64,000 nt of DNA from Cyanophora paradoxa CCMP329 (lineage: Eukaryota; Plantae; Glaucophyta), in assembly GCA_004431415.1 (NCBI GenBank), contig QPMI01000273.1, positions 13,965 to 77,964 of the forward strand. The letters run 5' to 3'. The position numbers and the translations under genes were made by a program. Below, in pieces: positions 11,766 to 53,971 of this stretch. Numbering within the stretch: the first letter of the stretch is position 1; every line of letters begins with the position of its first letter. A model generated the notes under the pieces. The model was not told where the DNA came from, ran no database searches, and was given only the letters and a program-made list of their open reading frames with translations.

Positions 11766-11833
11766 CTAGCACTGCTACAGCTGATGGTCCATGCAGCCGC
11801 TGGCTTGAAGATGGTGACACGCGAACGGGAAGA

Positions 11834-13875: not shown

Positions 13876-13881
13876 GACCTC

Positions 13882-14042
13882 AGCTTAGAGGCCTTGGCTG
13901 CGAAGCAAGACTGAGGCTTGTACCCCAGGGGCGCACTTATAACTTGTAAGTGCGCCCCTTGTACATATGTGCGTAAGCAAGGCTGCCTTTATTTGGCAGC
14001 CATACACTGCCCTATGCTACGCTGACGCTCACATAGGTTCGA
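13882..14042 (-). repeat. Split direct repeat A1 (element 5' end; probable promoter)
   Basis: Identical to 11834-11994; contains a TATAA-bearing hairpin about 65 nt upstream of the gag ATG. Confidence 0.95.
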
Positions 14043-14852: not shown

Positions 14853-17800
14853 ATGAGCGAACGTCAATTGCAACGGGTTCGAACTCGGCCGCGCGCGGGC
14901 CGGGGCACCCGGGACCCGGGATCTGCGCGCGCTATCTCATGCGGCCGTGGCGTCGCGCGGGCGCGGGGGACAGAGCCGGCGGCCGCACGGACCGGCGCGC
15001 ACTCGTTCGAGGAGGTGATGCGCCAGCTGGAGGAGCTGCGCGGGCACGTGGAGCACCTCACGCGATCCGGCCACACACACGGGTCGACGTCGGCTCACGT
15101 TCACGATCAGAGGAGACCCGCCGGTCACGACGCCGGCCCTGCGCCGCCCCGTGCGCCCCAATTTGCAAGCTTGCGCGCGCGATGTGTCCCACCCGCCGCA
15201 ATGTGTCCGGTCCGGATCCCATGACCCCCATTCTCTTCGCCTGCAGAGGACGCGTCGGCGTCGCAGCGGCAGCAGGAGCGCGAGGAGCTCGAGGCGGCGC
15301 GCGGGCGGGCGCGGCGGGAGGAGCTGGGGCGGCTGCGGGCGGCGCAGGAGGGCCACTACATCGTGGGCCTCAAGGACGGGGCGACGGAGGAGCACGTGGA
15401 GGCCGTGCGCGGGCACGCGCGGGCGGCCGCCCGCCGGCACCACGGCGCCGCCCACGAGGAGCACGTCCGCTTCCGCCACTCCTTCTCGCGCGCCCTTCGC
15501 GGCTTCTCCGCGCGGTGCGCGCGCGCGTGCCTCCAGCGCCCCCCGACCGCGAGGACTTGCAGATTGGTCTGAGCGCCCCCGGCCGGCAGGCTGTCGCCGG
15601 CGGTGAAGGCGGAGCTGGAGGCGCACGAGCGCGTCAAGTTCGTCGCCCCCGACGGCGTGCGCCGCCACTGCGCATGCGCCCCGGGCCCCCGCCACGGCCC
15701 CGGCCGACGGCGGAGGCGCGCGGGGGCAGGTGGTGGTCCCCGCGCAGTACGCAATCTCGCCGGAGACGCCGGCCCCCGACTTCACCTCCTACGTCACCCC
15801 GCGGGACGCCTGCTGGACTCAACAATACTTCATCTACAGCGACACCTTCCGCTCCCCCCTGGCCTGCCCCGTCATGCCCTGGGCCCTCTCCATCCCCTCC
15901 GACCCCGCGGACATGTCGAGCCCCAACCTCGCCTGGCACCTCGACCGGTGATCACGACGAGCCTGCAGCGCCAGCGCCAGTCGAGAAGGAATCTCGGGCT
16001 GACGGCTGGCTTCGAATCCGGCGCAGGCTCGACCAGCCAACGGGCGGGATGACGCTGGACGGGCGCTTCGACCGCGGCACGGCCGGCGGCGAGGGCGCCG
16101 ATGTCTACGTCATCGACACGGGCATGCGGGGCGACCACCCGCAGCTCGCCGGCCGCGTGGTCTGCACGTTTCCCTTCGCGCCTCTGAAACGCGTATCCTC
16201 GCGATCATTGACGACCACGTACCCCTTCTAGGTACCCCTGTTCGACGTCGACGCGAACAGCGGCGCCGGCGGGGCGTCGGACTGCTCTGAGAACTTCCAC
16301 GGCACCGCCGTTGCTTCCGTGCGCGTGTTTAAATTTTCTGCTGTTTAGAGATCTAGACATTTAGTGGCTCGAGCTGAAGTCCCTGACTGGAGCTCGCAGG
16401 TGGCCGCCGGGTGGAGCGTGGGTGCGGCCCCCAAAGCGAGCGTCTTCTCCGTCAAGGTCTTCGAGAGGGCCCCGAGCTCGAGCTCCGGCGCCTGCTTCGC
16501 GGCGACGACGGACAGCCTCGTCATCGCCGGCATCGACGCCGCCATCGCCAGCATGCGGGAGCGCAACGCCACGCGCGCCGTCCTCCTCGTCGCCCTCTCC
16601 TCCGCCCCCGCCTCCCCGGGCACCCCTCTGAAGGTACAGCCCCGCCCGAGCAGTTGCTCGTCCCCCTCGCGCTCGCGCGCGCTCACCGGGCCGGGGCGCC
16701 CCAGGTCAACCCCGCGTACACGGACGCCTTCGCCCGCGTTCGCGCCGCGGGCGCACTCCCCGTCACCGTGCGGCTCTGCTGCGGCCCCAGATCTGATCTG
16801 CCGTGACTGGGTCGCTGACTGGGACCGGGCCCGCAGGCGGCGGGGAACCAGTACGGGGACGCATGCGACGCGATCCCGGGCAACTCGCCCGGCGCGATCA
16901 ACGTCGGAGCCAGCGACCAGGACGACTACCGTGCCGGCTTCTCCAACTGGGGCAGGTCCGCACAGCGCTTGTGGTTGATCATGAGTTCTTCTCTTCTAAG
17001 ATGTGTATCGCAGTTGTGTGGACCTGTTTGCGCCGGGCCAGAACATTCGGGCGGCGGCCATGATGCCCTCCACCATCCCAAGCACCAGTGTCAACAGATA
17101 TGACGGGGAGCACTACTACTGGAACACCGGGAGCGAGTACCAGACGTCTTCGTACTCGCTCGCGATCGTGCACGGGACCTCGTACGCGGCGGCCCTCGTC
17201 GCCGGCGCGGCGGCCCTCTACCGCGGCGCCAACCCCTCCGCCGACGCCGCCGTCCGTTCGAAAGCATTATTTGATTCTTATCGAATTCTTATCGTCCTGC
17301 CGCGTGACCCCGAGCGCCTCAGGCCGTGGAAGCGGCGATCTTGGGAGCTTCTCTCCCCGCGCTCGATCCGGCCGGTCTGAAAGGGGCTCCCAACCGGCTT
17401 CTCAACACGCGGGCCTTTGGGCTGAACACCACTGGTGCGCGCGCATGCACGGCAGCTTCTAGATCTGCGCCCGCGCAGTGCGGCCGGCGCGCTGACGGCG
17501 TGCCCGTGCCGTCATGCGCAGCTGCGGCCGCAGGGGAGGAGGTGGCCGTCGGGCCGGCGGCGTACAGGGCGGAGCTCTTCGCGGGGCCGACGGCGCGCTG
17601 CAACTCGACGACGCGGAGCCTCGCCGGCCTCCCCCGGGACCTCCACCGCTTCCGCTTCTTCATCGACACCTCGGTCTCGTATATGGTGACCTCCTGCTCC
17701 GGGGGCTGGCCCGCCTGCAAGAACGTCGACGTCAAGACGGTCCCGCGGTGGGGCGGTGGCCTCAGCGGCGTCTACCTCACGCGCGTCCGCTTCGAAGAGC

Positions 17801-20800
17801 ACGGGTGAGGCCGCGTCGTCAATGACACCCGGGCCCGCGGTCGCGGTCGCGCGTTGCAATTGACGGCCCGGGTCGGGTCGGGTCGGGCAGGCGCTCGCAC
17901 TTCCCCATCTTCGACGTCAGCGGCGGCCAGGCGATGGTCTACGCGGGGAACCCCGCCATGCCCTCCTACCAGATCGCGGAGAAGCTCGCCTCGGACGCCG
18001 CCGGCGAGAACCGTGCGGAACGCGATTGAGAAAATATTCGCTGTCCGATTGCGAGAATGTTGATATCAATGCGTCTTCGCAGTGCCGTTCGACCCGAATG
18101 ATGGGAACGGGGCCTTCTGGATCCGACCCGGCACCTACTATGTGCTGATCCAGGTCAGCGAACTCGAGCATAAAGCGCCCCAAGCTTCAGTGCGGCGCCC
18201 TGTCGTGAAATCCGCCGTTCACCGTGAAGCGTGCGCACGGGGCCGCAGGCATACGGGGACGCCACGTTCCGTCTGAACGTGCACGACCACACGTGCGCGC
18301 CGTCCTGGGCGAGCGTCGAGTGCCCGGCCCGCTGACGCTGACGCCCCCGCGCCGGCCGGCTGGGCGCGTGCGCGTGCGCAGGTGCCCGACGCCGAACCCC
18401 CACTTTGAGGCGCTGGCCCTCAAGTCGGAGGGGGCGTGCCGGTTCGCCGAGTTCCCCCTGTGCGGGGCGGCGACGCTGGTGGCGGCCCCGGAGAACTCGG
18501 TCGGCCTCAACCAGTCGGACCTCTTCGCGCGGGCGGGGCTCCCCTCGCAGGCCCCCGGCCCCTCCCACACCACTCGCGACCTCGTCATCCGCGCCTCCTT
18601 CCCCTACGGCTCCGGAGGTCCCCCCCGCCCCGCCCCGCCAGCCCCCTTCCGCGCCCCCGCGCTCCGCCAAACTCTGGTAGCCCCTCTAACTCTCCCCCCC
18701 AGCGCTGAGCGCCGGCTGCGGGTTCTCGTACGCGCCCTCGGCCGTGTACATCTTCGTCATGGACGGCTGCCCCTCGTCCCCCCACTCGCACGTCCTCGCC
18801 AGTGCGCGCCCGCGCCCGCGGCCTCGGGCGCGCGCCCCGTGTAACGGGGAGCGGCCGCGGCCCCGCGGGCAGGCATGGCGTGCCAGTCCCCGGTGGCCGT
18901 CTCTTCCGCCAAGGAGCTGCTGCCGGGCACCTACTACTTCGTCTACCTCTTCCGCGCCTCCGCCACCGACGCCGTCTCCTCGGCGGCCCCCTACATCGGC
19001 CCCCCCGCCACCCTCTCCTTCGGGACGCCCCAGCAGCGCGCCGCCTTCTGCGCCTACGGCACCGCCCCCGCCCGTCCGCCCCCTCTGCAGCCCCCTCCTC
19101 TCTCCCTCGCGCCGGCCGCTGACCGCGCGTGGCCGCGGCGCCCCGCAGGCCCCGCGTGCGGCGCTGGCGTGGCCGCCCCACTCCCCTACTGCGGGTCGCG
19201 CGGGGCGTCCCTGCGGGGCCAGCCGAGCGTGCTCGGAGGGGCGCGGGCGGGGAGCGCGGCCGCCTTCGAGCTGACGGAGCTCGGCTTCGCCAGGCGCCCC
19301 GGCCCCCCGCAGTCCCGCGGCCCGCTGCTCACGTGTCTCACGCGCGCGCAGGGTGGGCACGCGCGTGAGCGTCTGCGGGCCGGGCCTCGACTTCGTGCCG
19401 ACCCTCTACCTCTTCTACGGCTGCCCCAGCGACCCCGCCGCCTCCCGCGTCTACTACGGTGCGCGCGGCAGCCCCCGGCGGCGGCCCCCGCGTGCACGAG
19501 ATGAGCCCGGCCCCGGGCAGTGACGGGGTGCGAGATGAGCGTCTCGGCCTTCCACACGCTCTCCATCGGCTCCCCCATCTACCTCGTCGTCGAGGGCGCG
19601 CCGCCCGCGCCCTAGGCCTCCGGGGGCTCCATCCCGGTGCCCTGGCTCTGAACGGGGGCGGGCCGGGCGGTGGGGCAGGCGTCCTCACGGGCGACCGGTC
19701 GGGCAACTTCACCATTACGGTGCCCCCTGCGTCTTCGTGCCCGTGCCCCCCAGGCCCGGACCTGAGTCCGCGGTCGCCCCGCGCAGGTGTCGGACCCGGA
19801 GTGCGGCGGGCACTTTGCGGGGCCCGGGGCGGGTGCTCAGGAGCCGGGCCCCGGCGGCCCCGGCGCGCAGCAGTGCTTCCCCAACGCACCGCCCGTCGAC
19901 TACTACGACATAATCGTCCGCACCCCCCCCCTCCCCCTCCTCTCCCCCCCCCTCCCGCCCCCCTCCCTTCCCCCTGTCGTGATCGGCGGGCGCATGTGCA
20001 GTGCCCGCCGCCGATGACGCTCTCGCGCCTCTCGCCCGTGCGCCGGGGCGGCGCGGGGCCCGTCTTCTGCGGCGCCCCCGTCCCCGACCTGAAGGCCCGC
20101 CCCCCGGCCCGGCCCCAGCCCCGCGCGCGGCTCGCGATCGCTCGCTCAACCATCCCGCGCCGCAGGGCCTGCTGTTCGCGGAGTGGGGCGGCAACGTGAG
20201 CCTCTGGCAGAGCGAGGCGCCCGGCGAGGGCCTCCTCCCCGCCGTCACCTCGTACCCCTCCAACGCCGCCTGGACCGCCGCCGGGCTCCCCGCGAGCCAC
20301 TCCGGCGTGCACAAGGCGACCCTCCACCCCGCGCCTTCTAACACACCGCCGCCCGCTGAGGGCGGCCGCGGCGCAGCTGGACTTCAACGTGACGAACGGG
20401 TCGGGGCGGGGCCCGCGCGGCGCCTGCGCCCTCGAGCTCCGCGTCGTCGACGCCGACGGGCCCTTCGCCCGCGCCGTGCGCCGCCCATCCCCGAGGCCCC
20501 CGCCCCGCCTCGGCTGCCGACCCCGCGAGCAGAGGTGCCCGCCGCGGGAGCAGGAGCTGCTGGCGAGGGCGGGGCAGTGCAGCGTCCCCGCCCCCGACCT
20601 CGTCGGCGACGTCGGGGTGCGCTGCCCCGGGCCGGGGCGCGGGCCCGCGCGCCTCGGACCCCGCCGCTGATGCCGGCGCCCAGTTCGACGTCTCGTGCGT
20701 GCGGCCCGTGGACGGCGCGGCGACGGCCGTCCAGAGCGTCGCCCCCGGCACCCCGGTCCGCGCTCTCCCACCCGCCGGCGCCCCATGGCCGCCCCCGCCC

Positions 20801-21528
20801 TCCTCTGACGGGCGCGCTCCTCGGGGCGGCAGCTGATGGTGGGCGAGTCGTACGAGGCGCGCATCTACTCGAGCGCCTTCCCCGCCGGCGCCTCCTGCCC
20901 GCTGCGCTTCCGCGTGCGGCGGGCGGCCACGCCGAGGATCGCCGCCGGCCCCGCGAGCCCCGGCGAGATCGCCGGCGTCGTCGGCGGCTCCCCGGACCCC
21001 GTCCCCGTCGACCTCAGGTGCCGCCCCGCCCCGCCTCGCCCCGCCCCCGCGCGCCGCCAGGGGCCCGACGCGCCGGGGGGCCCGCGCCCCGGGGGACAGC
21101 TTTGCGCTGGAGGACGGGTGCGGGGACCACGCGCGGGCGTGCCGCCTGGTCGTGCGGGCGGCGGGGACCCCGCCGTGGGCGCCGGCGGCTCCCTCGCCGA
21201 CCCCGACGGCTCCCCGCGCCTCCTCTGGAACCAGGCCCGCAGCCCGGCCCGGCCCGGCCCGGCCCCCGCGGCTCGGGGCGGCAGCTGACGAGGGCGGGCA
21301 GACGTGCTCGGGGGACCTCAGGCGGGTGCTCCTGAGCCCCTACATCCGCCCCGAGTCCGCCCCCGCGCCCTTCGAATTCATCTTCTTCGCTCACGGGGCG
21401 CGCGCAGCGCGGCGGGGGCGCCGGGGGCCGTGGCGCGGACGTACCAGGTGGCCCTCACCTGCTCCTACGGGGCCGGCGCCGTCGCCTCCGCCGCCTGGAG
21501 CATCCCCCTCCGCCGCCCCCAGCCCTGA
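14853..21528 (+). CDS. Subtilisin-like S8 serine protease with I9 prodomain and long Cys-containing C-terminal extension, many introns; start uncertain
   Basis: I9: HYIVGLKD...LRGFSA; catalytic VYVIDTG, FHGTAVAS, AAGN, FSNWG/CVDLFAPG, GTSYAAALVAGAAALY; further exon-like blocks run to the stop at 21528. Confidence 0.85.
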
Positions 21529-21844
21529 GCGCCGGCCGGGGCACGCCGGCACGCCTTCGCGACGGGGCACGCCGGGGCTCAGCGTTCCATTGGTTTGATT
21601 TTAGTTCACGATTTTAGTTTTAGTTGATTTTTTTTGGTTTGCACTGCGAAATCGATTAGTTCACGAGTTTATGCTATGTTCAGGTCGATGACAGCATGTG
21701 CTCCTAATTGTGCATGCCCAGCCTTCATCATGATCCTGAATATTTCTGTCGAGTCGAACAGTATACGTATACGTAGTTAGTGAATCTCGAACTTGAATTC
21801 GAAGGTCGCAAATTTAAATGGAATTTCCGCGAAGTTGCTATTCC

Positions 21845-23200
21845 GCGCCGCCTCCCTCCGCCCCGCCCCGCCCCGCCACGTGCCCCTCTTCGCCCTGCAG
21901 CTGCCCCCGCCCGCCTTCGAGCTCGCCGCCCCGCCCCCGCCCTCCTCCGCCAGCCCCCGCCCCGCCCGGGCACGGGCCCCGCTTCCTGCCGCCGGCCCCC
22001 TCGGCCCCGCCGCCGGCCCTAAGGTCCCTCCTCGAGCAGCTCGCCGCGGGCCCCGCGGCGGCGCGCGGGCCCCTCGGGCGCTCCCTCTCGGCCCCGGCGT
22101 CGCCCTCGGGCCCGGGCCCGGGCCCGGGGCGGGCGTGGACCCGGCGCTGCCCGTGGGCCCGGGGCCCTCGCAGGAGGCCTTCGCCGCCGCCCTCGCCGCC
22201 CCGCCCGCCCGCCCTCGCCCTAGCGCCCCGCACGTGCACCCCCTCGCCGCCCCCGGAACACCGCAGGCGCGTGCACGTGCACGGCAGCTTCTGCGCGCGC
22301 GCGTGCGGCCGGCGCGCTGATCATGACGGCGCGCCCGCCGGCAGCTGCAGCCGCAGGGGAGGAGGCGGCCGTGGGGCCGGCGGCGTACAGGGCGGAGCTC
22401 TTCGCGGGGCCGACGGCGCGCTGCAACTCGACGACGCGGAGCCTCGCCGGCCTCCCCCGGGACCTCCACCGCGTCCGCTTCCTCGTCGACGCCTCGAGCT
22501 CGGCCCCCTGCATGGCGACTTAGGCCTCCTGCTCCGGCGGGTGGCCCGCCTGCAAGGTGGTGCGCTGCAGCGCTCGTAGCGCGGTCCCCGTTCTTCTGAG
22601 CTCGCGGTCGCGCAGGGACGAGTGCTCTGCGCAGGTCCACGGAGTTCCGAATCAATACAAAAGTTTTCACTCCCGCGCCGAGGCCGAGCAGTGGCTGCGC
22701 GACGGTCCGCCGCCCCCCGCGCCGCGAGCGCCGCCGGCCGCCGCGCCGTTACCACTCGCGCCCGCCGTGTCGAGCCCCTACTGGTCGGGCGCGAGCCTGC
22801 CTCCCCTCCGCCTCGTCCTCCTCCGCTCCGGCCCCCGCGGTCGCCCCGCCGCTGCCGCTGAAGCGGGCGCGGGCGGAGCCGCCGCCGCCGCCGCCGCTGA
22901 TCATGAAGCGGGCGCGGGCGGAGCCGCCGCCGCCGATGCGGGTGGACTCGCAGTGTACGCCCCCCGCCACCCCGCCACCCCCCCCCCCCCCCCCCCTCCC
23001 CCCTCAAGGGCCACTCGGGCGTCCCGGGCAACGAGCTCGTCGACGCGATGGCCGCCGCCGCCGCCGCCATCGGCGCCCGCGCGGGGCCCAGCGCGACGAG
23101 GGCCCGCCGCCGCCCTCCGCCTCCTCGGGCGGCCCGCCGCCGTGCCTCTGCCCCTCGAGCCCGTCACCAAGCGGCCCGGGCCCCGCCCGGGCTGCCGCTG
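21845..23200 (+). pseudogene. Mosaic of PLAC8 3' end, subtilisin internal exon and RNase H1-like fragments
   Basis: 21845-22223 is similar to 7535-7914; 22265-22556 is similar to 17436-17721; 22616-23200 has DECSAQVHGVPNQYKSFHSRAEAEQWLR and GNELVDAMAAAA; inserted stop codons. Confidence 0.8.
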
Positions 23201-23870
23201 AGCCGCCGCCCCCGGGCCCGCCCCCGCTCGCCGGGCTCCAGACCCCTTCCCCTCTTTCTCCTTCTAGATCTGCTTCTCTCCTTTGCTGTTCCTCTTCTCT
23301 CTTCGGTGCTCCAAGGCTCTCTCACACACCGCCTCTCCGTCCTTTGTGTCGTCCCTTTCTCTCTTCCGCTCCCGTGCTCCTTCAAGCTGCCCTCTATCTC
23401 CTCTAGATCTTCTCCTTCAATTTCCCCCTCTGTCCCCTCCTCTTCCCTCTCTCCTCTCCTCTCGTCTCCTTAGGCTAGGCAGGGCTCCTGTAGCTCGTCT
23501 AGAAGCTCCAGCGCAGCGAGTTGGCACGCACGGTGAGCGCCTCGCGGAATAGCGCCAGAGCCTGCAGCCGCTCGCTCATCCTGTACCCGGGACTCGGCAG
23601 GTCGGCTTGCAATTGCAAGCGCCGCAGCTCGCTCAGGTTCGTGCAGAGCGCCTGCGCGCACTAGAGATGCGGCGGGCGATGCGGACTCGCGCGTGCGCGC
23701 GAGGAATAAGGAGCGCGAGCCGAATTCCAAAACGGAGCGGATTTCGCGCTTAGTTTCGCGCCGAGGCGCTCCCCGCATCGCCCAGCAACTCTTCCTTATC
23801 GTTGGATTTCGCGCAGGCGTTCTTCTTCGTCCACCACGCGAGATTTCGCGCCAAGGCAGGCGAAGAAGCA

Positions 23871-25487
23871 ATGGCGAAGAAGAACTACTACGCCGTCCGC
23901 AAGGGTCACAGAACGGGGATCTTCACAGACTGGTGCGCATGCGCATCTAGATCTACAGCTTCCGCGGTGTCCGCTCGCAAGATTTGATCGGGCCCCTTCG
24001 CACAGGGACGAGTGCAAAGCTGCGACTACTGGTTACAGCGAACCTAGTTTCCGAGGCTTCAGGACGCGCGTGGAAGCCGAGGAGTGGCTCCGGGGTTCGC
24101 CGACCTCCGATGCCGCTCAAGCGGCGTGCTGACCCGCATGATCGCAGGGGCCCCATCTCCGCTCTGCGGGAACTTCGCGAGGGGCGCCTGCAACGACGAC
24201 ATCCACTGCCCGTGCGACCCCTAGCCGCGCTTCTGAACCGATGCGGACCTCACGCCGACGCAGGGACCGGCACGAGATGCCGCCAGTGGCGGCGGCGCCA
24301 ACGCGGCAGCTGCAGCCGGCGGTCGCGCGCTGGTCGGCCCCTGCGCATGCATCTGGATGGGGACTCCCGCCGCGCAGCAGCCCGCATGGCCGGCTGTCGG
24401 CTCCCGCCGCTCTGGCGATCGCTGGGACAAGCGGTCCCTTCGGCCGCGATTCCCGCGGCCTCCTGCCGCCTCCCGTGCTCGTGGCCGTGCCTGTCGAGAG
24501 CTCGTCTCCCGCCCGGCGGTGCGCTCGACACGTTTTGCCCTCTTACCGCCCGGCCCCGGGATCTGACGTCGCGCGCAGGGGGGGCCTTGAGGAGCCCCGC
24601 ACGGCAAAGCGGGCGCCCCCGGCAGCGGCTCCGTCGCCGCAGGCGCTGCACGTGAAGCGGGCGCGGGCGGGGCCGCCGGCCGACGCGGCGATCGGCGAGG
24701 ACGACGCCGTCATCTTCGCGTGCGGCCCCTTCGATTTCGCCCCCCTCCGCGCGTCCGTCCGACCCGCCGCGCAGGGACGGCGGCTGCTTCAAGAGCGCCG
24801 GCCCCGGCCCCGGCGGTGCGCTCGCGGCTGGAGGCCAGACGCGCCTCGAGCTGACGGTCGGCAGGCTGGGCGTACGCGCTGGTGCTGCCGGCGAGCGCGC
24901 CGGGGACGGGGGCCCACGAGGCGGCGCTGCGGGCGCGGAGCGGCTTCGACGCGGCGACGACGAACAACCGAATGGAGCTGCGCGCCGCCATCGAGGGCCT
25001 CACCGCCCTCCCGCAGGGCTTCCGCGGCAGGCAAGCGGTCGTCTCCCTTCCGAGCCCCGCCCGCAGCCGGCCTGACTCGGCCGCAGGGTGCACCTGTACT
25101 TCACGTCCCACTGTCCGCCGCCCGCCCTCCCGCCCGCCCCGCTGCCCCAACGCCGGCGCAGTCGTGATGAAGGGCCTGACGGAGTGGGTGGCGGCCTGGA
25201 AGCGGAAGGGCTGGCGCACGCCCACTGCAGACGGCGAGCGGCCCGTCGCGAGCGAGCACCTGTGGGGCGAGCTGGAGGCGGCGGCGGCCCCGCACGCCGT
25301 CTCCTGGCGCTGGCTCGACCCGAGGGGGCAGCCCCGCGCCGCCGGCTGCGAACTCGTCGACGCGATGGCCGCCGCGGCCGTCGCCGCCCGCGCCGGAGAG
25401 CAGCGCGCCAAGGGCGCCTCTGCCGCCCTCCGCCTCTGCCGCCCCGCCCCGGCCGTCCCCGCCCTCGCGCCCTCCTCCTTCCCCTGA
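23871..25487 (+). CDS. RNase H1-like protein (N-terminal hybrid-binding domain plus RNase HI domain), multi-exon
   Basis: MAKKNYYAVRKGHRTGIFTDW/DECK...FRTRVEAEEWL; IFA-DGGC; TTNNRMELRAAIEGL; WVAAWKRKGWRT; LWGEL; ELVDAMA. Confidence 0.9.
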
Positions 25488-26762
25488 GCCCGATCCGCCC
25501 TCCTCCTTCCCCCGGGCCTGATCAACGGGCCGCTGTAGGGCGGAGCTCCCTCTGCTGTAGGGCGGAGCTCGAGTGTAGCGCTGATATCTAGATCTATAGA
25601 CAGCACTGTCAGCTAGCTATGGGCTCGGCCGCGAGGGGCAGCGGGGGGGGCTGCAGCTGGCAGGGAGCCGAGCGGCCCTCCATGCGCTCTCATACGGGCC
25701 CGGGGCCCGCGTGGGGCCCGGCCCCCTGCGGAGGGGCGGAAGGAGGGGGTCGGAGGGGCCGAACCACGCCCCGCACAGCGGCACGCATGCGCAGGATCCC
25801 GGAGAGGAGGCCGGGGGCCGGCTTGGCGCCGGGGAAAATATTTGAAGCCGAGTACGACGGCGAAGTTGACGTCGTTGCAATATCGATTGCGCAGGAATAT
25901 AGTCGACGCTCATTTATAATTAGTCGGGACCGCCCCCAGCGCGTGCGATTATTTAGTCGGGACCGCCCGGCCCAACTAGCTATAGTACTGCCCCCCCCGA
26001 ATGCTTTCAAGTCAACGTTTCCCCGAATGGTAATGCAAATGGGGCCTACTCGAATCCACTTGCAATTGAATTCCGAAGGCCTCGACCCTTCGAGATCGAG
26101 CGACGCATTGCAAAACGCTCTGTCGCGTCCTACTTTCCCTTCCAAAGGAATGGGCAACCTGGCAGCTGCGCCTTGACGATGAGTTGCCAGTGCACATGCG
26201 CGATGGAGTCGAGTAGATCCAGATGCAAGTGCAATCGATATCGTCATGTGCACGAGCTAAAAAACCCCCGTTTGCGCAGGAGCTCGAATATGTATATATG
26301 TACAGCGACGCTAGATCTTTTGGTGACTGTATCGCAATCGACGGCGCCGGCGCCGTCGACGTCGTCGGGGGCGCCATCGTTAATCATTGAATGCTGGCGC
26401 CGGCGCCATCATTGATCTGTTTCGATCATTCACCCGTTGACCGAACCTCGCTCCCTAGGCCTGTAGGCACTGGGGAGGGAGGGGGGGAAATGGGCAGGGG
26501 GGGCAGGGGGAGAGGGACAGACGGGGGTACAAGGGGGGGAAAGAGGGGGGGGGGGCAATCTAAGGAAGAGGCGGGGGACGAGACCTAAGAGGCGGGCCCC
26601 CCTCTCGCTCAGCAGCTGATCATGATCAGGATCATGCATCTGAATCAAAAACAAAAATCAAAATCGAAGCCTCGCTCTTTTAATTTGTTTGCTTGCCAGT
26701 CGCTAGACTGGCTCCTCACGTTCAAATTCTTTAATTTATTTACTACGGGATCCTTGCGAATA

Positions 26763-29700
26763 TTACTGAAATAAATAGAGTTGCATAGGCCGCGGCCGGG
26801 CGGAGGGGGGCCTGGGGCGGAGGGGGACGCCGGCGAGGCGGACGGGGCAGCGGGCGGGGTCGAGGAGGCGCGCGTTCCCCGCGAGCATGCGGCGGAAGAG
26901 GGCGAGCCCCCCCTCCGTCCTCCGTCGCCTGCCGGGCAGCCTCCCGCTCAACGAGCGGCAGCCGCGGGGGGCGGGGGCGCGCGCGGGCCTTGATGACGTG
27001 GAGGGCGCGGTTCCGGCCCGGCCCGTCGCGGGGTCGCGCGTCGCCGCCCGGTGCAGCCGGGCCACCTGCGGCCCCCGGCCCCTCTCAGAAATCAAGACAA
27101 CAATCAACAGCCCGATCGCGAGCTCGGGGGGCCGACGGGCCGGCCGCGGGGAGCCTGCCTGCTCGGGCTCCAGCCGACTCTCGGGGTCGGCAGCATCCGT
27201 GTACCCCACATGCAGCAGGGGCGCCCCGCCGGGGGTCCGGAGCAGCGCCTGCCGCAGCGCCCGACGGATCCCGGAGTAAATATTTTAATGCAAACCGAAT
27301 CGGTTTTCGGCATTAGACTCAAATATGTGCGCCCTAGACCTTCAATGTCGAATTGGACTGCAGCTGCTGGCCCGACCTGGATGTGGATTGCGACGTCCGC
27401 CGCTTGGGTGCCCTCGACGGCGCGCCCGTGGTGGTCCAGGCCCTCCTGCGCATACACTGCCGTCAGACGAGTGCACCCGGAGCCCGCCTGCACCCTGCAC
27501 GCGGCTCATGCAATGCTTTAATTTCGAGGGCGAGTTGTGATTGCCGTCGACCCGGTCGAGTTCACGGCGGCGACTCGGAGCTGAAAGGCAGCGGGGGCAC
27601 CTTCACGAACTTGACGAAGAGTATGGAGATGGACTCTTTCAGGTCCCGCACCGCGCTCCCCGTGGGGGGCGGGGCGCGGGCCCGGGCCCCGCCCCACGCC
27701 CAGGTACGCCGCCCGGTCCAGCACGCGGCTCGTCCCGGAGGGGGGTCTCTGAGGGGAGGGCGGGCGCGGACAGGTGACTCCCCACGTCCTGCCGGCGCCC
27801 CCGGAGTCGGCGATTCGAATCGCGAGGCCGCGAGCGCAGCGCACTTGAATGCTCTGTGCGTCGAGGTCGCCCCACGGGGCGAACGTGGCGAGGTCTGTGC
27901 GCACAGGGTCCGCCGCAGGCACCTGTAACGCATGCGCATGCGCGAAAATCAGTTGATGTCACGATCAGCCAACGCAAAATTAAATCTGAAGCTTCAGGAA
28001 ACGTGCACGCAGGTCTTCAATTTTCCCAAACATGCTAACATTTGATTATAAACCGTAAGCAACATTCGCACCTTGCTGAAAATGAGCACATCGGATGCGT
28101 GCAATTTCGATGGGACTTGTCCCTTACATTTCGCCTTGTGCCCCCCATTCCAGTCATTCTTCTGACAGTTGCGTCCACAGTACCAGGCACTCTTGCATCT
28201 GCTCAAAAATTCAGCTACATGTACATGTGGATTCCTGACAAGCTTATATAATTAAGGGACACGCTAGCTATAGGGATAAATACCGAGAGCAACTGGAGAG
28301 CGGGGGATCGGAGGCTCCGCGAAGGCGGCCGCAGCCGTCGCAGCGGTCGCGCTCGCGCGCAGAGGGGCTGCGGGGCGCCGCGGGGTGCGAGAACGCCACG
28401 CGGGCCTCGCAATCGCGATCGTGCTCTCCGCCGGACCCTGCCGGCGGTTCGAATTCAGCACGGGATCGGAACCCTGCAACACCCCGGCCTGCGTCCGCCG
28501 ACGAATGCGCTGACCCCAGCGCAGGAGGGCGACGTGGGGCGACTCCATGACGACGCTGAGGTCGGGGGCGGGCGCCACGAGGCGAACGGTGTACCCGTCC
28601 ACGCGCTCCTCCACCTCGCGCACGCGGGGCGGGGCCGGGGCGGAACCCAGGGCCGGCGGCAGGCGGCGGGCGTGGGGAGGGAGGGGAGCGGGGGGCGAGG
28701 CGAGGGGGTGGGCGCGGTGGAGAGGGGGCGTGCCGGCGAGGAGGGGCATCCCCGTCTCGTCTCGCCGCCCGTGAGGCCGACCTCCGTGCCCCCGCTGCGC
28801 GCGCGCGCCTCCCAGTCCAGCGGGGCGAGGAGGCCGACCGCGCACAGCTGATCGTCGGCGTCGACGCACTCGAACGCCGCGGCGTCGGGGGCGGGCGGGA
28901 ATGCCCCCTCCTCCGCGCTGGCCGCGTCCGCCCAGGTGAGGGACGCCGCCCCGACGGCCGCGACGAGGCGGAGCGAGGGGCAGGGGGCCGGGGGAGGAAG
29001 GTAGGGCCCCGGCGGCTCGCCCTTCGCCACCAGCGGAGGCGCAAAGGGCTGCGGGACGCCGCTGGCCTGGAGGTAGACCAGGGGCGCCTCTTCGATGCCA
29101 GCAACCGCCTTCGCCACCCGCCACTGCTCCGCGTAGGAGATGCGCGAAAAGCCTCTCCCCGCCAACGCGCGGGCCGCGAAAAGCGCATCGCAGGCGCGCA
29201 GAACGGCCGTCGCGTCGGCGGAACGGCCGGCGGCGTTGCGGGCTGCGACCGTGAACAGGAGCGGGGTGGCGTGGTAGGGTGCGCCGGCTCTGTTCCCGAG
29301 GGCGGCGAGGGGCGGCTGGGCTGTGTGCCCGACGAGGGCGGCGAGGGCCGCGTGGATCGATGCCACCACCCTCGCGAAAAGAGACGGAAGTCGGGAGGCT
29401 TAAGCTTGAGAGCAGAGGCCGCTTCCAAAGCACCGTCACCTTCGCGGCGATCCGACATATTAGCTACAGGAAGAAGTTTGAACGGCAATCGCAAGGCGCC
29501 GCAATGTTCAGCGGACCTCCAGCGCCTCGCTCGTGACGAGTGTGCGTGCAGGATGTCCGGGCAGAGATGGCGGGCGCGTGAAGAGCTGCAACGAATCCAA
29601 ATCCTGAAAAATGTACGTGAATTCAGTGATTAACGTCCCTGCGTTCTTGAGAGTTTTCTTGAAGCTTAAGCAAATTACAGGCGCACTGTGGCGAGCCTGA

Positions 29701-32700
29701 GGCCGAGGAGGGTGGGCAGCAGCGCCGGCTGGAACCCCAGCTCCTCCTGTATGTATTCTTGCGGGTGAGCGTGCTGCGAGAGCCACTGCGAGAACTGTTG
29801 CGCGTCGCGGTGTTTCGTGTCAGGGCAAGAGCGGCTCGCGCCTTCATGGAAGTGGTGGCGATCGCAGCGTGGTCGGCTTCACGTAGCCGCGGGCCGCACG
29901 CGGCGAGAAGGGGCCAGAGGCCTGCAAGGCGGTCATAATAAAGGGCCACTGACTTGCCGTGCGCGTCAGTTGGGTCCGGGGAAGGGAATTTAACCTTGGC
30001 GCCGCGGCGAATCTGAAGATGTATACGTATACGTAGATATCGATCTAGAGAGCAGGGACTTCGGGAAAGGAACGTTAACAATTGCAAAGCCGCTGAGCTT
30101 GAGGAAGAAACTTGAAATGCAGAACTTAAGCTTAAGCTTTAGAGGGCGGTCCGACGGTCATCGAGCTGGAGGCTAGGGCAGAGGTAGGGCGCGGGCCCCC
30201 CCGGAGGCGGGGGATGGCTCGCAGGGCGCGGGCCGCCGGGGGCGCGCGGGGGATGGCTCGCACAGGCAGGGGATGGTGTGCTCCTGCGCAATCGAACCGC
30301 GGCCGCGGCCGTCGCGCGCGCGAGGCCCTGAGGCGCGGTGGGAGCACGGGTGCGCGTGTGCGCGGGTGTGCGGCTTGCAATTGCCTAGAGGCTGGCCTCA
30401 AGCTCCGCGCGCGCGCGATCTGCATGCGCGGGCAAGCCTGGGCGCGGGCGCAGGGACGCTGCTCGAGCTCATGATCACGCTCCGCTCATGATCATGATCA
30501 GAAAGCGGCCGGCAGCGGCTGCGCAGCGCTAGCGGGCCAGCTCAGCGGCTAGTGCGACCGGCTTAAGCTTGTGGCCCGCTCGCGCGCGGTCGGAGCGGCT
30601 GTGGCGTGCACGTGCGCGGCTGGCGCGGCTAGCGTCAGCAGATCTAGACTGCCGCGCGCGCGAGAGGCGTGACAGTTCAGATCATCGGCGCGAGAGCGCT
30701 GAGAGCGCGCGAGCTGAAGAGGAAGCGGCCGGATCCCGGAGGGAGAAAGCGGCCTGCGTTGCGTCGCGCGAGAGGCGTGACAGTTGAAGCCGCGGCCGGC
30801 GCAGAGCTGAAGAGGAATGCGAGTGCGCTAGTGCGACTGGCTTGTGGCCGAGCTCGGGTGCGTTGACCGTGTCGAACCGAGCCGAGCTGTGGCGTGCGCG
30901 GCTGGCGCGCGCGGCTAGCGATAGCTGCAGCAGAGTGCAGTTGAGCGCTATCCGATCATCGGATCGCGAGCTGTGCGGGAGTGAGAAAGCGGCCGGGCGG
31001 GGGCGGCGGGGGGGGGGAAGTGGTAGGGGGGGTTTGTAAAAAGACTTTCGCAGGGTAAGTTAACGCACTCTCCAATTTGATTGGCTAGCGCGCGCGGCGT
31101 CCTCCCACGCGACCGCGCTCGCGCCCGGCCTCGCTCTTGCAGTACGGAATGTCGAGCATGATGCGCGCAACGACCTCGAACTGGTTTGGCCCGTATATCT
31201 GAACCCTGTGCGTCCCTGGACCCGTTTTTGTCCCGGGTGTTGGTGCCTGTTCCTGGGTCACCCTTTGGTCGGACGGGACCGGGAGACATGGTTTCGGGAT
31301 CCCCTTGGGATGCGCTTGCAGGACGTACCGCGCGGCCCGGGTTTTGAGGAGGTCGGGGAAATGGGATTTGGGGTAGGGTTGGGCCCAAGGGACAGGGACA
31401 GGGGAAGTGTTTTTCCCTTCCCCAATTATGATTAGCCAGCCGAGGGCGATTGCAAGGCAAAACCGCGCGCGCGCGCCCTCGTTGTCGGCGAGGTTGGAGC
31501 AGTCGATGAAGTCGAAGCGGTGCGCAGCGGGCAGCGTCTCTGCGCCGCCGGCGCTCGCCCCTTCCACGCACAGCTGCAGGCCGTCCGCTGGGTACAGGGC
31601 GACAGAGACGCGGCCCGCCGCCACGGCGGCCGCGAAGGAGGCGGCGGCGCGGGCGAGGCGGCGGGTGGCGGCGCGGGAGAGGGCGCGCGGGGGCGGCTCG
31701 GCGAGAGCGTCGCGGGCGGAGGCGGGCGGGGCGGGGACGAGGCGGAGGGAGTCGGCGGGGGCGGCGGCGTCCGCGTGCGCGGCGAGCTCGTCCGCGGGGA
31801 AGACGCGGAAGGACTGCAGCCCGTGGTGCACGGGGCAGAGGCCCGCGGGCGGCGTGACGAGCGTCGGGCTGAGCAGGCGCGGGCCCGTGTCCGTGTCCGT
31901 GCCGTCGTCCGCCGAGATTGACAGGCATCGGAACCTGGTCGCATCGGAGCTTGAGCGTCCAGAAGCCGACTCGATCGCGAGCTCTTGCAAAACTAAAATC
32001 GCGGACCAGTCCTCCAGCTCGCGCTGGACGCTCGCGCTGGAGAGGAGGGCGGCGAGGCTGCGGCGGATGGAACCGCGGAAGCCGAGTTTGGGGTCGTTGG
32101 TGCGGAGGGCGTTGCCGGCGCCGGCGTCGCCCTGGCCGGCGAGCAGCATGCGGGAGACCCGGAGGTCGTGCGAGTGCCGCTGCACGCGGGCCTCCGCGAG
32201 CTCGAGGGACGGGAGGTACGAGTGCGGGGAGAGCCAGTACTGCCAGACTTCGCGGAGGAGGCGCAGGTCGCCCGCGCACGGGACTCGCAGCCAGGACGCG
32301 AACGGGGAGGCGGCCCAGGCGCCGGGCGAGGCTGCGGCGGCGACGAGGGGGCGGAGAGGAGGGCGTCGAGGCGGGCGCACTCGGGGGCGGGCATGTCGAG
32401 GCAGAACCAGAGGCGCCAGAGGAAGAGGGCGTTGGCCGGCGTCGGCTCCGAGGGCTCGCCCATGCCCGCCGCCACCAGAAGCAGAACGGAGTCCGGATCC
32501 CTGCCGCGGGGTCAGTCGGGACGAGAGGCGGGGGGCCCGGGGGCGGGAGATGAAAGCGCAAGGGGCCGCCAGCTGCAGCTGCAGACCGTGCGAGGATGCA
32601 GCGGTCGATGTCGCACAAGTGAAGGGCGAGCTCGAGGGGTGTCGACGGCGCGTGGCCGGCGCCGGCGCGCGGCTCGCGACCGCCGGTGCCCGCCCGCGCC

Positions 32701-33990
32701 TCCTCGCACGTCCGGAGCGGGTTGCGCACGTCGCCGACGCCCACATAGAGCACCTGGACCGGCCCGCCCGCAGCCGCCGCCCCGCGCTCCAGCTCGGCGC
32801 GCGGCGCGGCGGGGCGCGCCTCCGTGTTGCCGAAGGGGTACTGGAGGTAGTGGTTGCCGTGGTGCACGTGCCGCGCGAGCAGCGCCCCGCCCGTCGGGAG
32901 GCGCGGCACCCGCGCCCCGCACGGGTCGAGGGGCGCGCGGGGAGAGGACGCGGCGAGGTCGCGCTCCGCCCCCGCAGCTCCTCCTGCGCCTCGGCGTGCC
33001 CGGGGGCAAAGTCCAGGGCCGTCCGCAGGGCCGCCGCCGCGTCCGCGGGCCTCCCGAGGTGCCGCAGCGCCCGTCCCGCCCGCAGGTGCAACTTAGCCGC
33101 GACGGGCCGCTGCTCGGGGGGGACGAGGGACGGATGCGTCGGCCCCTGCGCATGCGCGCGCGTTCGCTTCTTGTGAGGCGCATGCGCAGGAGAAGTGCCG
33201 GCGCCGTGGAGGCCGGGAGGCCACGGCTCACGAGAAGGGCGGCCTCGGCGGCCTCGGCGGGGCGGTCGAGGGCGAGGGAGGCAGCGGCGAGTTTCGCGCG
33301 CGCCGCCACGTCGCCAGCGTCCGCCCCGAGCGCCCTCGCGTACAGGACCACCGCCTCCTGCGTGTGCTTCGCCTGCGCACAGAGCATTCATATGCATTTG
33401 CATGGCTATATTTTTAATCGTGCGTACGAGATCTAGAGCGAATTCGAACGCACGAAGACGGCGTTTCCAGCCTCGCGGAGCTCGCGCGCGGCCGCTGCAG
33501 CCGCAGCGGCGCGAAGCGCTGCCTCGCGGCCCTCGGCATACGAAGCGCGTGGCTCCGCGCTATCCGCACGAGCGCACGCCTCCGCTGCCTCATCGAACCT
33601 TCTCAAAGCAAAGAGCGCTTTCGCCAGCCGCCAGTGCGCCTTCGCTGACGGCTGCAGCTAGCGCTGAAGAGCGGCGCGCGCGTCACGCTCGGCTTCTTCG
33701 CCTCGCCCCGCTCGCAGCAGCGCCGCAGTTCTGAGAAGCGATTTTCGCGAAACATTAATATTTTAATCTCGCTAGCGCTTCTTCGCGACCGCGCACCTGT
33801 TTCCCAGGATGACCGCGCGCTCGGACGCGTTTTTCGCTGCTTTTAGCGCTTTTGCGAAGATTTCAGCTGCTTCATCGTACTCGCCACGTCGGAAGCGCAG
33901 AACGCCGGTCTCGGCAAGATCTCCTGCGCTTTGCATACGAGAGGCCGATAGCGTCTCGAAGGCTTTGATCGTTTCCGCTCGCGTTTGCAT
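26763..33990 (-). CDS. TPR + DUF4470-like + MYND zinc-finger protein, multi-exon; 3' boundary uncertain, may include a second gene below about 28000
   Basis: TPRs (FRRGEYDEAAEIFAKAL; LHLRAGRALRHLGR); YPFGNT, VLYVGVGDVRN, HLCDID, FDFIDCSNLADNEG|LWPLLAA; CSRCKSAWYCGRNCQKNDWNGGHKAKC at about 28130-28206. Confidence 0.75.
29371..29486. repeat. About 110-bp dispersed repeat, second copy at about 34410-34520
   Basis: Shared core CAGAGGCCGCTTCCAAAGCACCGTCACCTTCG and flanks. Confidence 0.85.
30540..30920. repeat. Diverged internal direct repeats inside the 1.55-kb intron (29922-31476)
   Basis: GCTAGTGCGAC.GGCTT...GTGGCC, CTGTGGCGTG...CGCGGCTGGCGCG and GAGAGGCGTGACAGTT each occur twice. Confidence 0.7.
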
Positions 33991-34216
33991 TCCGAATTCG
34001 AAGTTCTGGCCCACGGCCTGCAGCTGGTACGTATACGTATACGTCCGGTGATCGAATTTGATCGCTCCCCTCCCCTCGTCTTTTGCATCTAATTGAGTGC
34101 TCCTCGAGCTCCCTCTATCGCGATCTCCTCCTTCCTGCTACCAAGTTAATTCGAATTTAGCTTCTCCGGATCCTCGACCTCGGGCTATAGCTACCCTAGT
34201 AGTAGTAATTCGACCC

Positions 34217-34431
34217 AACTTCCGTTTCTTTTCGCGAGCTCGAGGGCGGTGACATCCACTGCGCATGCTTGTAGTGGACCATATGCATGCACGTGCACAG
34301 GTCATGCACATACTTTAGATCAACTCATGATCAGATAAAAGTCCATAATTATATTTATTGCATCTCACTACGTATACAAGCAGTGGATGTCACCGCCCTA
34401 GGCCTCGAGCTCGCGAAAAGAAACGGAAGTT
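34217..34431. repeat. Fold-back inverted repeat (arms about 34217-34276 and 34366-34431)
   Basis: Arms are reverse complements apart from three 6-bp insertions. Confidence 0.9.
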
Positions 34432-35065
34432 AGGAGACTTGACACCAGAGGCCGCTTCCAAAGCACCGTCACCTTCGAATTCGCGGCAAATATTACCTAC
34501 AGGAAGAAAGTTTAAACGGCGAGCTCCGAGGCGTCGCCCCAGCATCGATACCCAGGACCCCCCCGTGGCCACTTATGCGACTAGCGAGCCCGAGCCCGAG
34601 CGCCAGCGCTCAGCGGCTCTCCTGTAGGTAATACTAGCGCTAGCCACGTCGGCCACCTCAAGCCCGTCCCCTATAGCCCGAGCCTGAGCCCCTCTTCTTC
34701 TCCTTAAGCTTCTCCGATCCGAGCTCGTCGAGTGCAGCCGCGGGGCAGGCCGGGCCGGGGGCCCTACCCCGTCCCCGAGCCCATCGGCCGAGCCCCCTCC
34801 CCCTCCCCGAGCCCGTGAACCCCTCCCCTCCCCGAGCGCGTTGCAAGTTGGGCGGGGCCGACCCCACCCCCACCGGTACCCCCCCCCCCCGTCCGGATCC
34901 CTCACGAACGAGAGTTCCTCTTAATTATTTATAATTATAAGCTTGAAGCCTTGAACTTCGACTCGGCGATCGCGCGATCTGCGCCTCGGGGCCGGCGCCG
35001 CGGCGGCGCGAGCCCCGGGCCGGCAGAACATCACGCGGATCCGATGATCGGCGTGGCGGGCGGCG

Positions 35066-35213
35066 GGACTCGTCCGGAAGTCGGAACTCGGGAGTCGGGA
35101 CTCGGGAGTCGGAACTCAGTGACTCGCGATCGGGACTCGGGAGTCGGGATCCGGAACTCGGGACTCGGGAGTCGGGACTCGGGACTCGGGAGTCGGGACT
35201 CGGGAGTCGGGAC
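35066..35213. repeat. Heptamer array (TCGGGA[C/G])n; related runs at about 14570-14597 and 59498-59556
   Basis: Directly visible. Confidence 0.85.
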
Positions 35214-35516
35214 CGTCGCCGGCCCGTCGGACGTGGCCGGCAGCCACTGGGCCAGTAGCAGTCGGAGGCTATACCTAGCCCACTGGGCCAGTACAGAGTA
35301 CGGAGTAATCATTTTGAATATCTACTCCCCCTGAAATCATTAAATGACCTGAAATTTAGGCTGCATGCGCAATTCATCAGGACAATTTTCTGCAAGCTTT
35401 TTTTTGCAGGTTCGACGGCCAGCCGCTGAGCTGCAGTCGCGATCGAATACTAGTATACCGGTAATACCGGACTCTACTGGCTAGTCACTCTACTAGTACT
35501 ACCGAGTAGTACCGAC

Positions 35517-35986
35517 TAGGGCTGGGTTCAGTCACTGTCAGTCAAAGTCAGAGGGTCTGACTGACCCGACTGAGTCACCAAATTGGCCGACTGAGGTTCT
35601 CTCAGTCCCATACAAAACCCTGTTGGGAGCGTGCCCCCCTGTGGGCTTTTTCCATCTGAAGCTCGACGTGGATCGATCTAAAAAGGATCTTCTGTCGTCT
35701 TACCTCCAGAAAAACAACGTAATCTGAACGAAACCGCCCGCGCTAACGAGGCTAACGGGGGCCGAATTCCTTTCACCAGTGTTCTGAAGCTTTGCTCGCC
35801 TAATCACTCCCTACTGCCCGCGCACTGTGCTTGGCAACTTCGATGGATCGCATCTGGATCATTTCCGGGTCATTTTCGTCTGTTTTTGCACGGTAGCCTG
35901 ACTGAACCTTGGGTTGACTGATTCAGTCACAGTCAGGGGCGCTGAGCGACTGGGTCAGGGGTGGAGCCTGACTGAACCCAGCACTA
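35517..35986. mobile_element. hAT-type non-autonomous element (470 bp)
   Basis: 18-bp TIR TAG[G/T]GCTGGGTTCAGTCA (1 mismatch); 8-bp TSD GTACCGAC at 35509-35516 and 35987-35994; subterminal TGACTGA/TCAGTCA repeats. Confidence 0.9.
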
Positions 35987-36797
35987 GTACCGACTCGCGA
36001 CGCTACGAGTTCTGGCTCTATGGCGCAGTTTCCGCCATACAAACTTTTTCCGAGTCAAGTCGATTGACTAAACTCGGCCGAGTTTTTAGACTGGGAACAC
36101 CTTCCAACTTCCAAGTCAAATTAGTACTGCGCTGGCCCAGTGGGACCGTCGAGGTCCCCGTACTAATTCGACTTGAAAATGCCAGTGTTTTCCGATTGGG
36201 CACGTGCCGGTATATTTCACATGCTATATAAAAGCTGCTGTTGGCAGTTACTAGCCGGCAGTTACTAGGACTGTACCAGGAGGCTACTAGAACCTACCAG
36301 GTAGCTCCGGCGCCTGCCAATCTGGAGTTTGGCCCCAGTTCGCCAGGAAACTCCGCCTAAGGCCCATAACTCGTAGCGCGAGTCGCGAGTCGCGAGTCGC
36401 GACTCAACGGCAGCCGCGGCGTCCGACGGTCCGGCCGGGTCCGCGTCGACGTCCGAGACGGTCCGACGTCGACTCGGCGAGTCGGCGAGTCGGTCCGAGT
36501 GGACCGAGTCGGTGACTGTCGGTCCGACGTCGACTCGGCGAGACGGTCCGCGTCGAGTCGCGCCGTCGACTCGACGCGCGGCGACGCGGGCGGCGGGCCC
36601 GGGCCGCGCGGCCGGGCCCGCGCGCCGCCCGGCGCCCGCGGCCGCCGGCCCGGCGGACCGGCGATCACTGTACGCCGCGGTACGCCGCGGGCCGCGGCGG
36701 CCGCGCCCGCCGATCGCGACGTATCGATATCGCGTACGCGTGCCCGTCGCGTGGCCCCAGCGGCGGCCAGCGCTAGCGCCGGGGAGTCAGCCGTCAC

Positions 36798-37087
36798 CCG
36801 TGTAGCACGAAATTACCGCGGCATAAATTATAATTAATTACCGCGTTATATAGACCCTGGCCTGAACGTGCACGTGGCCAAAATACCGCGGTACCAACTT
36901 TACCAAATTACCGCGTTATAAGATTTGGAGGCTTGTATGGGGCGGTAATTGTAGGGGGGGTACTGTATGGAGCAACGTAGCAGCAGGTTATTACCGTGGT
37001 ACCAAATTACCGCGGTACGTCACAATTTCGGCGCGCTAATTTTGTACCGCGGTAATTAAGTGAGCGCGGTATTATAGTGCCACACGG
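36798..37087. mobile_element. MITE-like element with many ATTACCGCG motifs
   Basis: 11-bp TIR CCGTGT[A/G]GCAC; repeated internal motifs in both orientations; TSD not clear. Confidence 0.5.
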
Positions 37088-37295
37088 TAGTAGTACGTTC
37101 TGTGAGACTCTGACTCGGAGCTCGAGTCTCGAGTTCCGATCGCGACTCCTAGCTATAGGCTACCGGTATAGCTCGAGCTCTGAGCCTCTGACTCCTCCGA
37201 GTCTAAAGAGTTACTGCTAATGGCCACTTTTCTCGATTGCAGTAAGCGATCGCTTCTGATTCGCCGTTTTCAGCAGTACCGACTACTACCGACTA

Positions 37296-37587
37296 GTACC
37301 GAGCACTCAGAGACTCTTTATAATTACAGAAGAACACAATATTAATGCGCTCAATATTAATGCTTTTTTGGACTCGGATCCGGCCGAATGAATGCGTTTT
37401 GAAGCTTTTCTGCTGCGATACTATGATGTGGGGTACATTATTATTATACCGTACATACAGCCGGCCGTTCTTATTCACGCGCCCCAAAATTAATGCGTTT
37501 TGACGGCGCGGAAAACGCATCGAATTGGGGATGCACTGCGCGCGCGGCATTAATATTATGCGTGCATTAATATTCTGTTATACGGTA
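37296..37587. mobile_element. TA-flanked (Tc1/mariner-like) MITE remnant; related copy begins at about 58479
   Basis: The reverse complement of the right end, TACCGTATAACAGAATATTAAT, resembles TACCGTAAAACAGAAAATTAAT at 58479; shared AACGCATTAATTT.GGGGC motif. Confidence 0.5.
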
Positions 37588-37610
37588 GCTCGTAGTTGTA
37601 CGGTACTATA

Positions 37611-37853
37611 CACAGCTCGTTTTTTTTAGCAGTCGACTCAACATGCCCGTTGCATGGGCAAGGGTAGCCGGCGATCGCGATAACTTTTCACCCGTCGCAG
37701 CACGGCTAGTCTCCTCGCAGAATGTTGTAGCCGGCAAGCTAGCGGGTAGAATGGTGCTAGCCCGGTCCCAGCCCAACCCAATACCCGAAGAGCGATTTCA
37801 CTTTAACCGGATTTCAGCCGTGTTGGGTCGACCGGTAAAAAAAACGAGCTGTG
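37611..37853. mobile_element. CACTA/EnSpm-like (CMC) MITE, 243 bp
   Basis: 33-bp TIR starting CACAG (3 mismatches); 3-bp TSD ATA at 37608-37610 and 37854-37856. Confidence 0.8.
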
Positions 37854-37986
37854 ATACGGTGTACTTCACCCACAAAAAACTGCCTGAGTCCACGCCGACT
37901 CCACGGTACCGGCCCGGCGGTAGTAACGGTGCTAGTACTACCGCGGTAAACGGTAATTTCCGATCTAGTATTTTTCTGTTACACGG

Positions 37987-38179
37987 CACTGTAGGCGTAG
38001 TTTTATTGCCGTGGAGTCAATTTGCCGAATTCGACCGAAACCGGAATTGCCGTGGCAATAAATTGCCGAATTATCCTGCCGAATTGGCAAAACCACGTAC
38101 CCCCATGCAATTGGCGTGGTGCTAGATTGCCGAATTCGGCTAAAAAAACGGCTAAAAAACTACGCCTACAGTACTAGTG
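37987..38179. mobile_element. CACTG-ended MITE with TTGCCGAATT internal repeats
   Basis: TIR CACTGTAGGCGTAGTTTT; the right TIR is interrupted by a 6-bp insertion (AGT-ACT-AGT, 38170-38178); TSD not clear. Confidence 0.65.
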
Positions 38180-53967: not shown

Positions 53968-53971
53968 CCCC

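Follow-up and report, generated by a model that had tools for sequence, protein, structure and literature searches.

A uniform three-base inverted footprint in Cyanophora paradoxa DNA, probably left by the excision of CACTA-like transposons

Paralogous copies within a 64,000-nucleotide stretch of Cyanophora paradoxa DNA (the window, to which all positions refer) raise the question of what process turns a trinucleotide X into X-rc(X)-X, where rc(X) is its reverse complement, with a gain of six base pairs. We refer to this form as class I, and to a second form, X-C-rc(X)-G-X, as class II. An initial annotation made from the DNA alone had listed 14 class I indels between paralogous copies; thirteen are present, and the remaining one (17670/22493) is ambiguous, an equally good alignment placing the gap elsewhere. 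Three further scars were found at 22230, 17512 (one mismatch) and 34404. An unbiased census of 17 six-bp paralog indels yielded 10 of the exact class I form and 2 with one mismatch, against chance expectations per indel of 0.8% and 6.7%, respectively. The sites are as follows.

17458 to 17466: class I scar, X = TCT; short form at 22290
21895 to 21903: class I scar, X = CTG, in a derived partial copy with one extra C; the source exon at 7583 has X only
22318 to 22326: class I scar, X = TGA; short form at 17493
22519 to 22527: class I scar with one mismatch; short form at 17690
22898 to 22906: class I form, X = TGA; short form at 22859; polarity uncertain
29399 to 29407: class I scar, X = CTT; short form at 34438
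30562 and 30606: class I scars, both within the block 29950 to 30950; short forms at 30841 and 30894
34214 to 34434: fold-back with private scars at 34260, 34369 and 34397 and a shared scar at 34404
34474 to 34482: class I scar, X = TTC; short form at 29441
38170 to 38178: class I scar in the right TIR of a CACTG MITE; exact in reads

The 22859/22898 difference is real and remains unpolarised because a third copy near 24645 also carries six extra bases. The region 21845-23200 is itself a mosaic copied from 7536-7940, 17424-17721 and an RNase H-like gene at about 24600-25470.

Class I 9-mers number 511 in the window, against 42, 57 and 154 under Markov nulls of order 1, 3 and 5. Enrichment persisted after recent duplicates were masked and a local null was used (447 versus 53 ± 10). 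The restriction of X to three nucleotides also held, other lengths giving little or nothing over the null: the 2-nt form exceeded it only 1.3-fold, the 4-nt form occurred 17 times versus 5 (the window list being largely CG runs), and the 7- and 8-nt forms were absent from the window. Other lengths and spacers were likewise rejected as further classes, as only three-base units with no spacer or with C/G stand out. The control form X-complement(X)-X was exactly at expectation (21 versus 21) once shifts of class I sites had been removed, and a Hermes-like 7-mer class was at the null in the window (333 versus 310). Class I density in the host DNA of the window is 6-23 per kb; 19 unrelated control loci, mostly of 40-60% GC and thus imperfect controls, contain 0-1.1 sites per kb. 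The excess is present in every GC bin and strongest in AT-rich DNA. Nearly every trinucleotide serves as X (29 of the 32 canonical triplets), with a spectrum that resembles a non-specific TSD and has no TWA bias, and flank symmetry around the scars is at chance (0.21-0.32), leaving no flanking inverted repeats that could prime a strand switch. The X-rc(X)-X observation is confirmed.

The motifs were also found intact in independent reads, a check that the initial annotation had called for. Logan contigs from four runs showed zero differences from the window over 38340-41183, and five shorter pieces had exact or near-exact contigs, each in at least one run; together these read-matched pieces contain 42 class I and 11 class II sites, all unchanged. 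Since the motifs are unchanged in short-read contigs, they are not an assembly artefact. Three of the four runs are dated 2024, later than the 2019 assembly paper, and are probably of the same strain; DNA of the window is present in eighteen DNA runs, of one organism. The published C. paradoxa genome has 67.6% GC and short introns (PMC6704402). Separately, 47923-58376 consists of near-identical tandem duplications. Nearly all the differences between them are 1-bp homopolymer indels, which may be errors of long reads, or the duplications themselves may be false.

The claim that these differences are insertions was borne out: a three-copy DNA set and paralogous proteins indicate that the long form is derived, polarity resting on three-way DNA and four-way protein comparisons in which the outgroup copies lack the long form. 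Of the three copies at 29354, at 34381 and in the left fold-back arm, just one carries the scar at 34397, and the fold-back arms match over about 48 nt after the scars are undone. At the protein level, exon 31481-32329 of a TPR/MYND gene matches the EukProt protein C. paradoxa tig00001160_g7342 at 100% identity, together with three paralogs, and two scars could be placed in this gene.

32198 to 32206, reverse strand: exact in-frame class I scar, L to L-E-L, absent from three paralogous proteins
32492 to 32500, reverse strand: exact class I scar at an exon start, R-D to R-D-P-D, absent from paralogs

Each corresponds to a 2-residue insertion relative to the paralogous proteins. When the four proteins were aligned, two residues was the commonest indel size, and five of about 9 distinct 2-residue indels fitted the rule, versus 14% by chance (p = 0.004, from a small and alignment-dependent sample). 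Preservation of the reading frame, also asserted at the outset, is therefore upheld by the in-frame insertions at 32198 and 32492, but not by the example given for it, cct-agg-cct at 2017, which is one site in 4.3 kb of ORF where 0.8 is expected and provides no evidence. The exonic 9-mers at 31571 and 32862 align without gaps and are ordinary codons, not scars; L-Q-L at 31571 is common to two paralogs, and H-V-H-V-H at 62246 resembles what we take to be a HIT motif. The TPR/MYND gene spans 26800-33950 on the reverse strand at full length, and the published model g7342 represents the 5' part alone. A GC-AG intron or insert of 1.5 kb interrupts the gene at about 29925-31466, and its intronic DNA includes a copy (29354-29502) of the DNA upstream of the gene (34381-34537).

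Class II is specific in orientation. It occurs 56 times versus 5.3 expected, while the mirror form with G before and C after the inverted unit is at the null (7 versus about 4). One cluster of such sites is the following.

38222 to 38714: class II cluster, with sites at 38222, 38256, 38293, 38486, 38624, 38646, 38695 and 38704

Hybrids carrying only one of the two spacers show an excess of 38 versus 44 for the mirror control, where independent formation of the two ends predicts some 270; they are not specifically enriched, and the independent-ends model was rejected. A 5-bp C-NNN-G target as the source of the spacers was rejected as well, C before and G after the site being found in only 3 of 46 cases. 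Class II is nearly absent from the gene-dense region 14800-28000 (p = 2e-8) and concentrated in repeat-rich DNA. An oriented class II without specific enrichment of one-spacer hybrids, and with a different location, points to two discrete products, probably derived from two families. The spacer bases C and G are the end bases of local MITEs. No clean paralog pair for class II exists in the window, so that here its support is statistical only.

Scars occupy 8-18% of bases (about a tenth) in intergenic and long-intron blocks, in line with the earlier remark that the motif is common in introns and intergenic DNA. Two blocks are particularly dense.

29950 to 30950: scar-saturated block in the 1.5-kb intron or insert; 24 class I and 5 class II sites, 18% of bases
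58380 to 59600: second scar-rich block, intergenic; 16 class I and 7 class II sites, 12% of bases

Young LINE and DIRS elements carry scars over 0.1-0.4% of bases, near background. One DIRS-like element (8175-14045, with gag, RT/RNase H, tyrosine recombinase and split repeats) is almost scar-free; its RT has a 79%-identical counterpart in another sample (L001). By hand count, paralog pairs contain 16 scars versus 73 substitutions, a ratio biased upward by ascertainment, and a hand-calculated steady-state estimate from motif density gives about one scar per 11 substitutions; the scar rate is thus about one per 5-11 substitutions. A simulation with random scars and 8 substitutions per scar produced 190-240 single, 17-21 four-unit and 4-9 five-unit motifs, roughly matching the 164, 20 and 7 observed.

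We consider it likely that the scars are excision footprints of C...G-ended transposons with a 3-bp TSD (CACTA-like), the flanks having been closed as hairpins and joined on TSD microhomology. The structure of the products, their fixed 3-nt length, the polarity of insertion, the C...G orientation and the discreteness of the two classes are direct observations, as are the near-absence of scars from young retroelements and the presence nearby of a C...G MITE with a 3-bp TSD. The scars also look as a footprint should, both TSD copies being retained with an inverted copy of the flank between them. Insertion of an element would give L-X-[element]-X-R. At excision, the transposase would nick one strand at each end, and the 3'-OH of the flank would attack the other strand, so that each flank would end in a sealed hairpin. 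If the nick fell precisely at the junction, the outcome would be class I, which fits the perfect hairpin formed at the junction in RAG geometry; a nick one base inside the element would keep its terminal C at the hairpin tip and lead to class II. A host nuclease would then open the hairpins, the left end becoming X(C)rc(X) and the right end its mirror image, and annealing, flap trimming and fill-in would yield L-X-(C)-rc(X)-(G)-X-R, while an alternative annealing would restore the empty site and remain invisible. Because a 3-bp TSD puts rc(X) on both opened hairpins, a 3-bp microhomology would be guaranteed and the join would be exactly X-rc(X)-X wherever they were opened. The two classes might reflect two families or two coupled chemistries. 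Repair by microhomology only, perhaps without Ku, would account for the uniformity: Ku70 and Ku80 are listed as absent in C. paradoxa (PMC11936186), on the basis of OrthoDB/UniProt look-ups in which missing data are possible, and their absence would explain uniform repair.

Two elements in the window are candidates for the source.

37611 to 37853: MITE of 243 bp with CACAG...CTGTG ends, a 33-bp TIR and an exact 3-bp TSD (ATA); multi-copy; candidate source family
37987 to 38179: CACTG...CAGTG MITE whose subterminal repeats are CACTA-like; high copy; a single mutation separates its flanks from a 3- or 4-bp TSD

The CACT(A/G) features are split between them, the CACTG ends and repeats occurring in the element with the imperfect TSD and the exact TSD, the only one of 3 bp on a MITE in the window, in the element with CACAG ends. 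Contig depth over each of them is tens to hundreds of times that of single-copy DNA, a sign of many copies that does not amount to a count. Pfam scans of 106 window ORFs revealed no transposase, and no site both filled and scarred was seen in the window or among the contig joints shown; the mechanism is accordingly inferred, and so are all its intermediates, including a transposase-made hairpin, the transposase family and the repair pathway. Searches of metagenomes with the TIR pattern returned 14 scattered hits, all of them single and lacking a second TIR, and no further Cyanophora or glaucophyte DNA was obtained through RT, proteasome-exon or 599-aa ORF protein searches (exons unspliced), a viral scan or paralog contigs. 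Other repeats lie in the same region. A hAT-like MITE at 35517-35986 has TAGGG/TAGTG ends and an exact 8-bp TSD and is multi-copy; in run X4 another copy is interrupted by 32 nt of stacked class I motifs. A high-copy repeat family with TA-CCGT ends, possibly Tc1/mariner-like, is found at 36800-37090, 37900-37986, 38320 and 58480, and the CACTG MITE seems inserted into one end of it. A 7-bp tandem array occupies 35081-35213, with similar units at 14553-14598 and around 59500.

Among known systems, CACTA/EnSpm elements have a non-specific 3-bp TSD, CACT(A/G) ends and subterminal repeats. They share with the scars the non-specific 3-bp unit, and such MITEs are present in the window; however, we found no publication describing such a scar density for them, or a footprint that uniformly takes the form X-rc(X)-X or X-C-rc(X)-G-X. 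EnSpm is active in Chlamydomonas mutation accumulation lines (PMC9977147). For hAT, Transib, RAG and MULE it is established that excision proceeds through hairpins on the flanks (PMC5499845), and it leaves palindromic footprints joined on microhomology (PMC5873905). The hAT elements Ac/Ds and Hermes thus also leave palindromic flank copies at the donor site via hairpins, opening and microhomology joining (PMC5873905, PMC5499845), but with an 8-bp TSD and heterogeneous products, unlike the uniform 3-bp unit of Cyanophora; moreover, the Ac/Ds tip base is the complement of the flank base (PMC5873905), whereas the Cyanophora tip is empty or a fixed C/G. A hAT source was rejected, the 8-bp unit and the 7- and 8-nt forms being absent despite the hAT-like MITE. 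Transib, the coding joints of RAG V(D)J recombination and MULE Muta1 share the flank hairpin (PMC5499845) but not the TSD, which is 5 bp or 8-9 bp in Transib and MULE, and excision of Muta1 is more than 90% precise in yeast; the low C-NNN-G count also excludes a Transib-type 5-bp TSD with an Ac-like tip base. The PIF/Harbinger element mPing has a 3-bp TSD whose microhomology directs repair (PMC4561436), but it targets TAA/TTA, excises precisely and leaves no inverted copy, and PIF/Harbinger was rejected as a source since its TWA target preference is not met. Short template-switch mutations likewise contain short inverted copies of neighbouring DNA (PMC5453318), with variable geometry and without fixed added bases. 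We found no description of a uniform, genome-saturating form, most subscription journals and several classic footprint papers being outside the search, and no paper in which a hairpin tip comes from the element's own base. Price et al. 2019 (PMC6704402) contains no match for CACTA or EnSpm, and Cyanophora is not mentioned in PMC6635534. Chemistry of this kind is known; its uniformity, the element-derived tip base, the saturating density and the effect on proteins are undescribed in the literature searched.

The initial inference of a dedicated insertion mechanism, with hairpin excision of a 3-bp-TSD transposon listed first, is supported. The other two mechanisms proposed, hairpin repair of 3-nt breaks and a double template switch, fit worse because they leave unexplained the fixed, oriented C and G of class II, which the annotation had missed, and the double switch also because there are no flanking inverted repeats for priming. 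An element might nevertheless be dispensable: a domesticated or misfiring transposase-like or other nuclease could make 3-nt staggered breaks that are filled, hairpin-capped and rejoined, C/G being added in one pathway, with no resident element. The scars (about 6 per kb) far exceed the visible elements, neither a filled/scar pair nor a transposase was seen, and one step would suffice for exonic scars; if true, the alga would have a built-in two-codon insertion process. We regard this as unlikely, as resident elements end in the very bases, in the same orientation, that form the C...G of class II, and modest hopping would be enough, about 1e-5 per copy per generation (assuming 1,000 mobile copies and a substitution rate of 3e-10 per site per generation). 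We also know of no host enzyme that combines a non-specific 3-nt stagger with hairpinning.

It is somewhat less plausible again that the same hairpin chemistry was performed, at least for class I, by a non-CACTA family with a 3-bp TSD (Harbinger, Chapaev3, Academ, Zator or an undescribed one). Class I retains no trace of element ends, and the two classes are located differently, with class II nearly missing from 14800-28000; on the other hand, X has no TWA bias, the window contains multi-copy CAC-ended MITEs, and excision of the Harbinger MITE mPing is precise and uses staggered cuts at the TSD (PMC4561436). Template switching or polymerase-theta templated insertion, in which three bases are copied from the opposite strand before return, would need no element, and short switches do yield inversions and inverted duplications (PMC5453318); yet it predicts variable lengths and priming inverted repeats, where the length is fixed and flank symmetry at chance, and it cannot produce a fixed, oriented C and G, so that class II already largely refutes it and we give it very little weight. 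Finally, assembly errors, effects of codons or base composition, and deletions that shortened an ancestral long form are refuted as general explanations, for although some exonic 9-mers are conserved codons and recent duplicates in the assembly show 1-bp homopolymer differences, the motifs are exact in short-read contigs, exceed expectation in all GC bins and have outgroups without the long form.

If excision of CACTA-like elements is the right explanation, the scars allow earlier hops to be counted, and their choice of target to be read, long after the elements themselves have disappeared, and glaucophyte aligners, repeat finders and indel models should account for the scar rule. The two classes would predict the positions of strand nicks for CACTA-like transposases, for which we found no biochemical data, one hairpin tip being the element's own base. 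The scars would be what makes two-residue indels the commonest class in the single protein family tested, so that the old proposal of protein diversity arising from transposon visits could be tested directly, and one uniform transposon footprint would be a leading class of mutation in the C. paradoxa genome.
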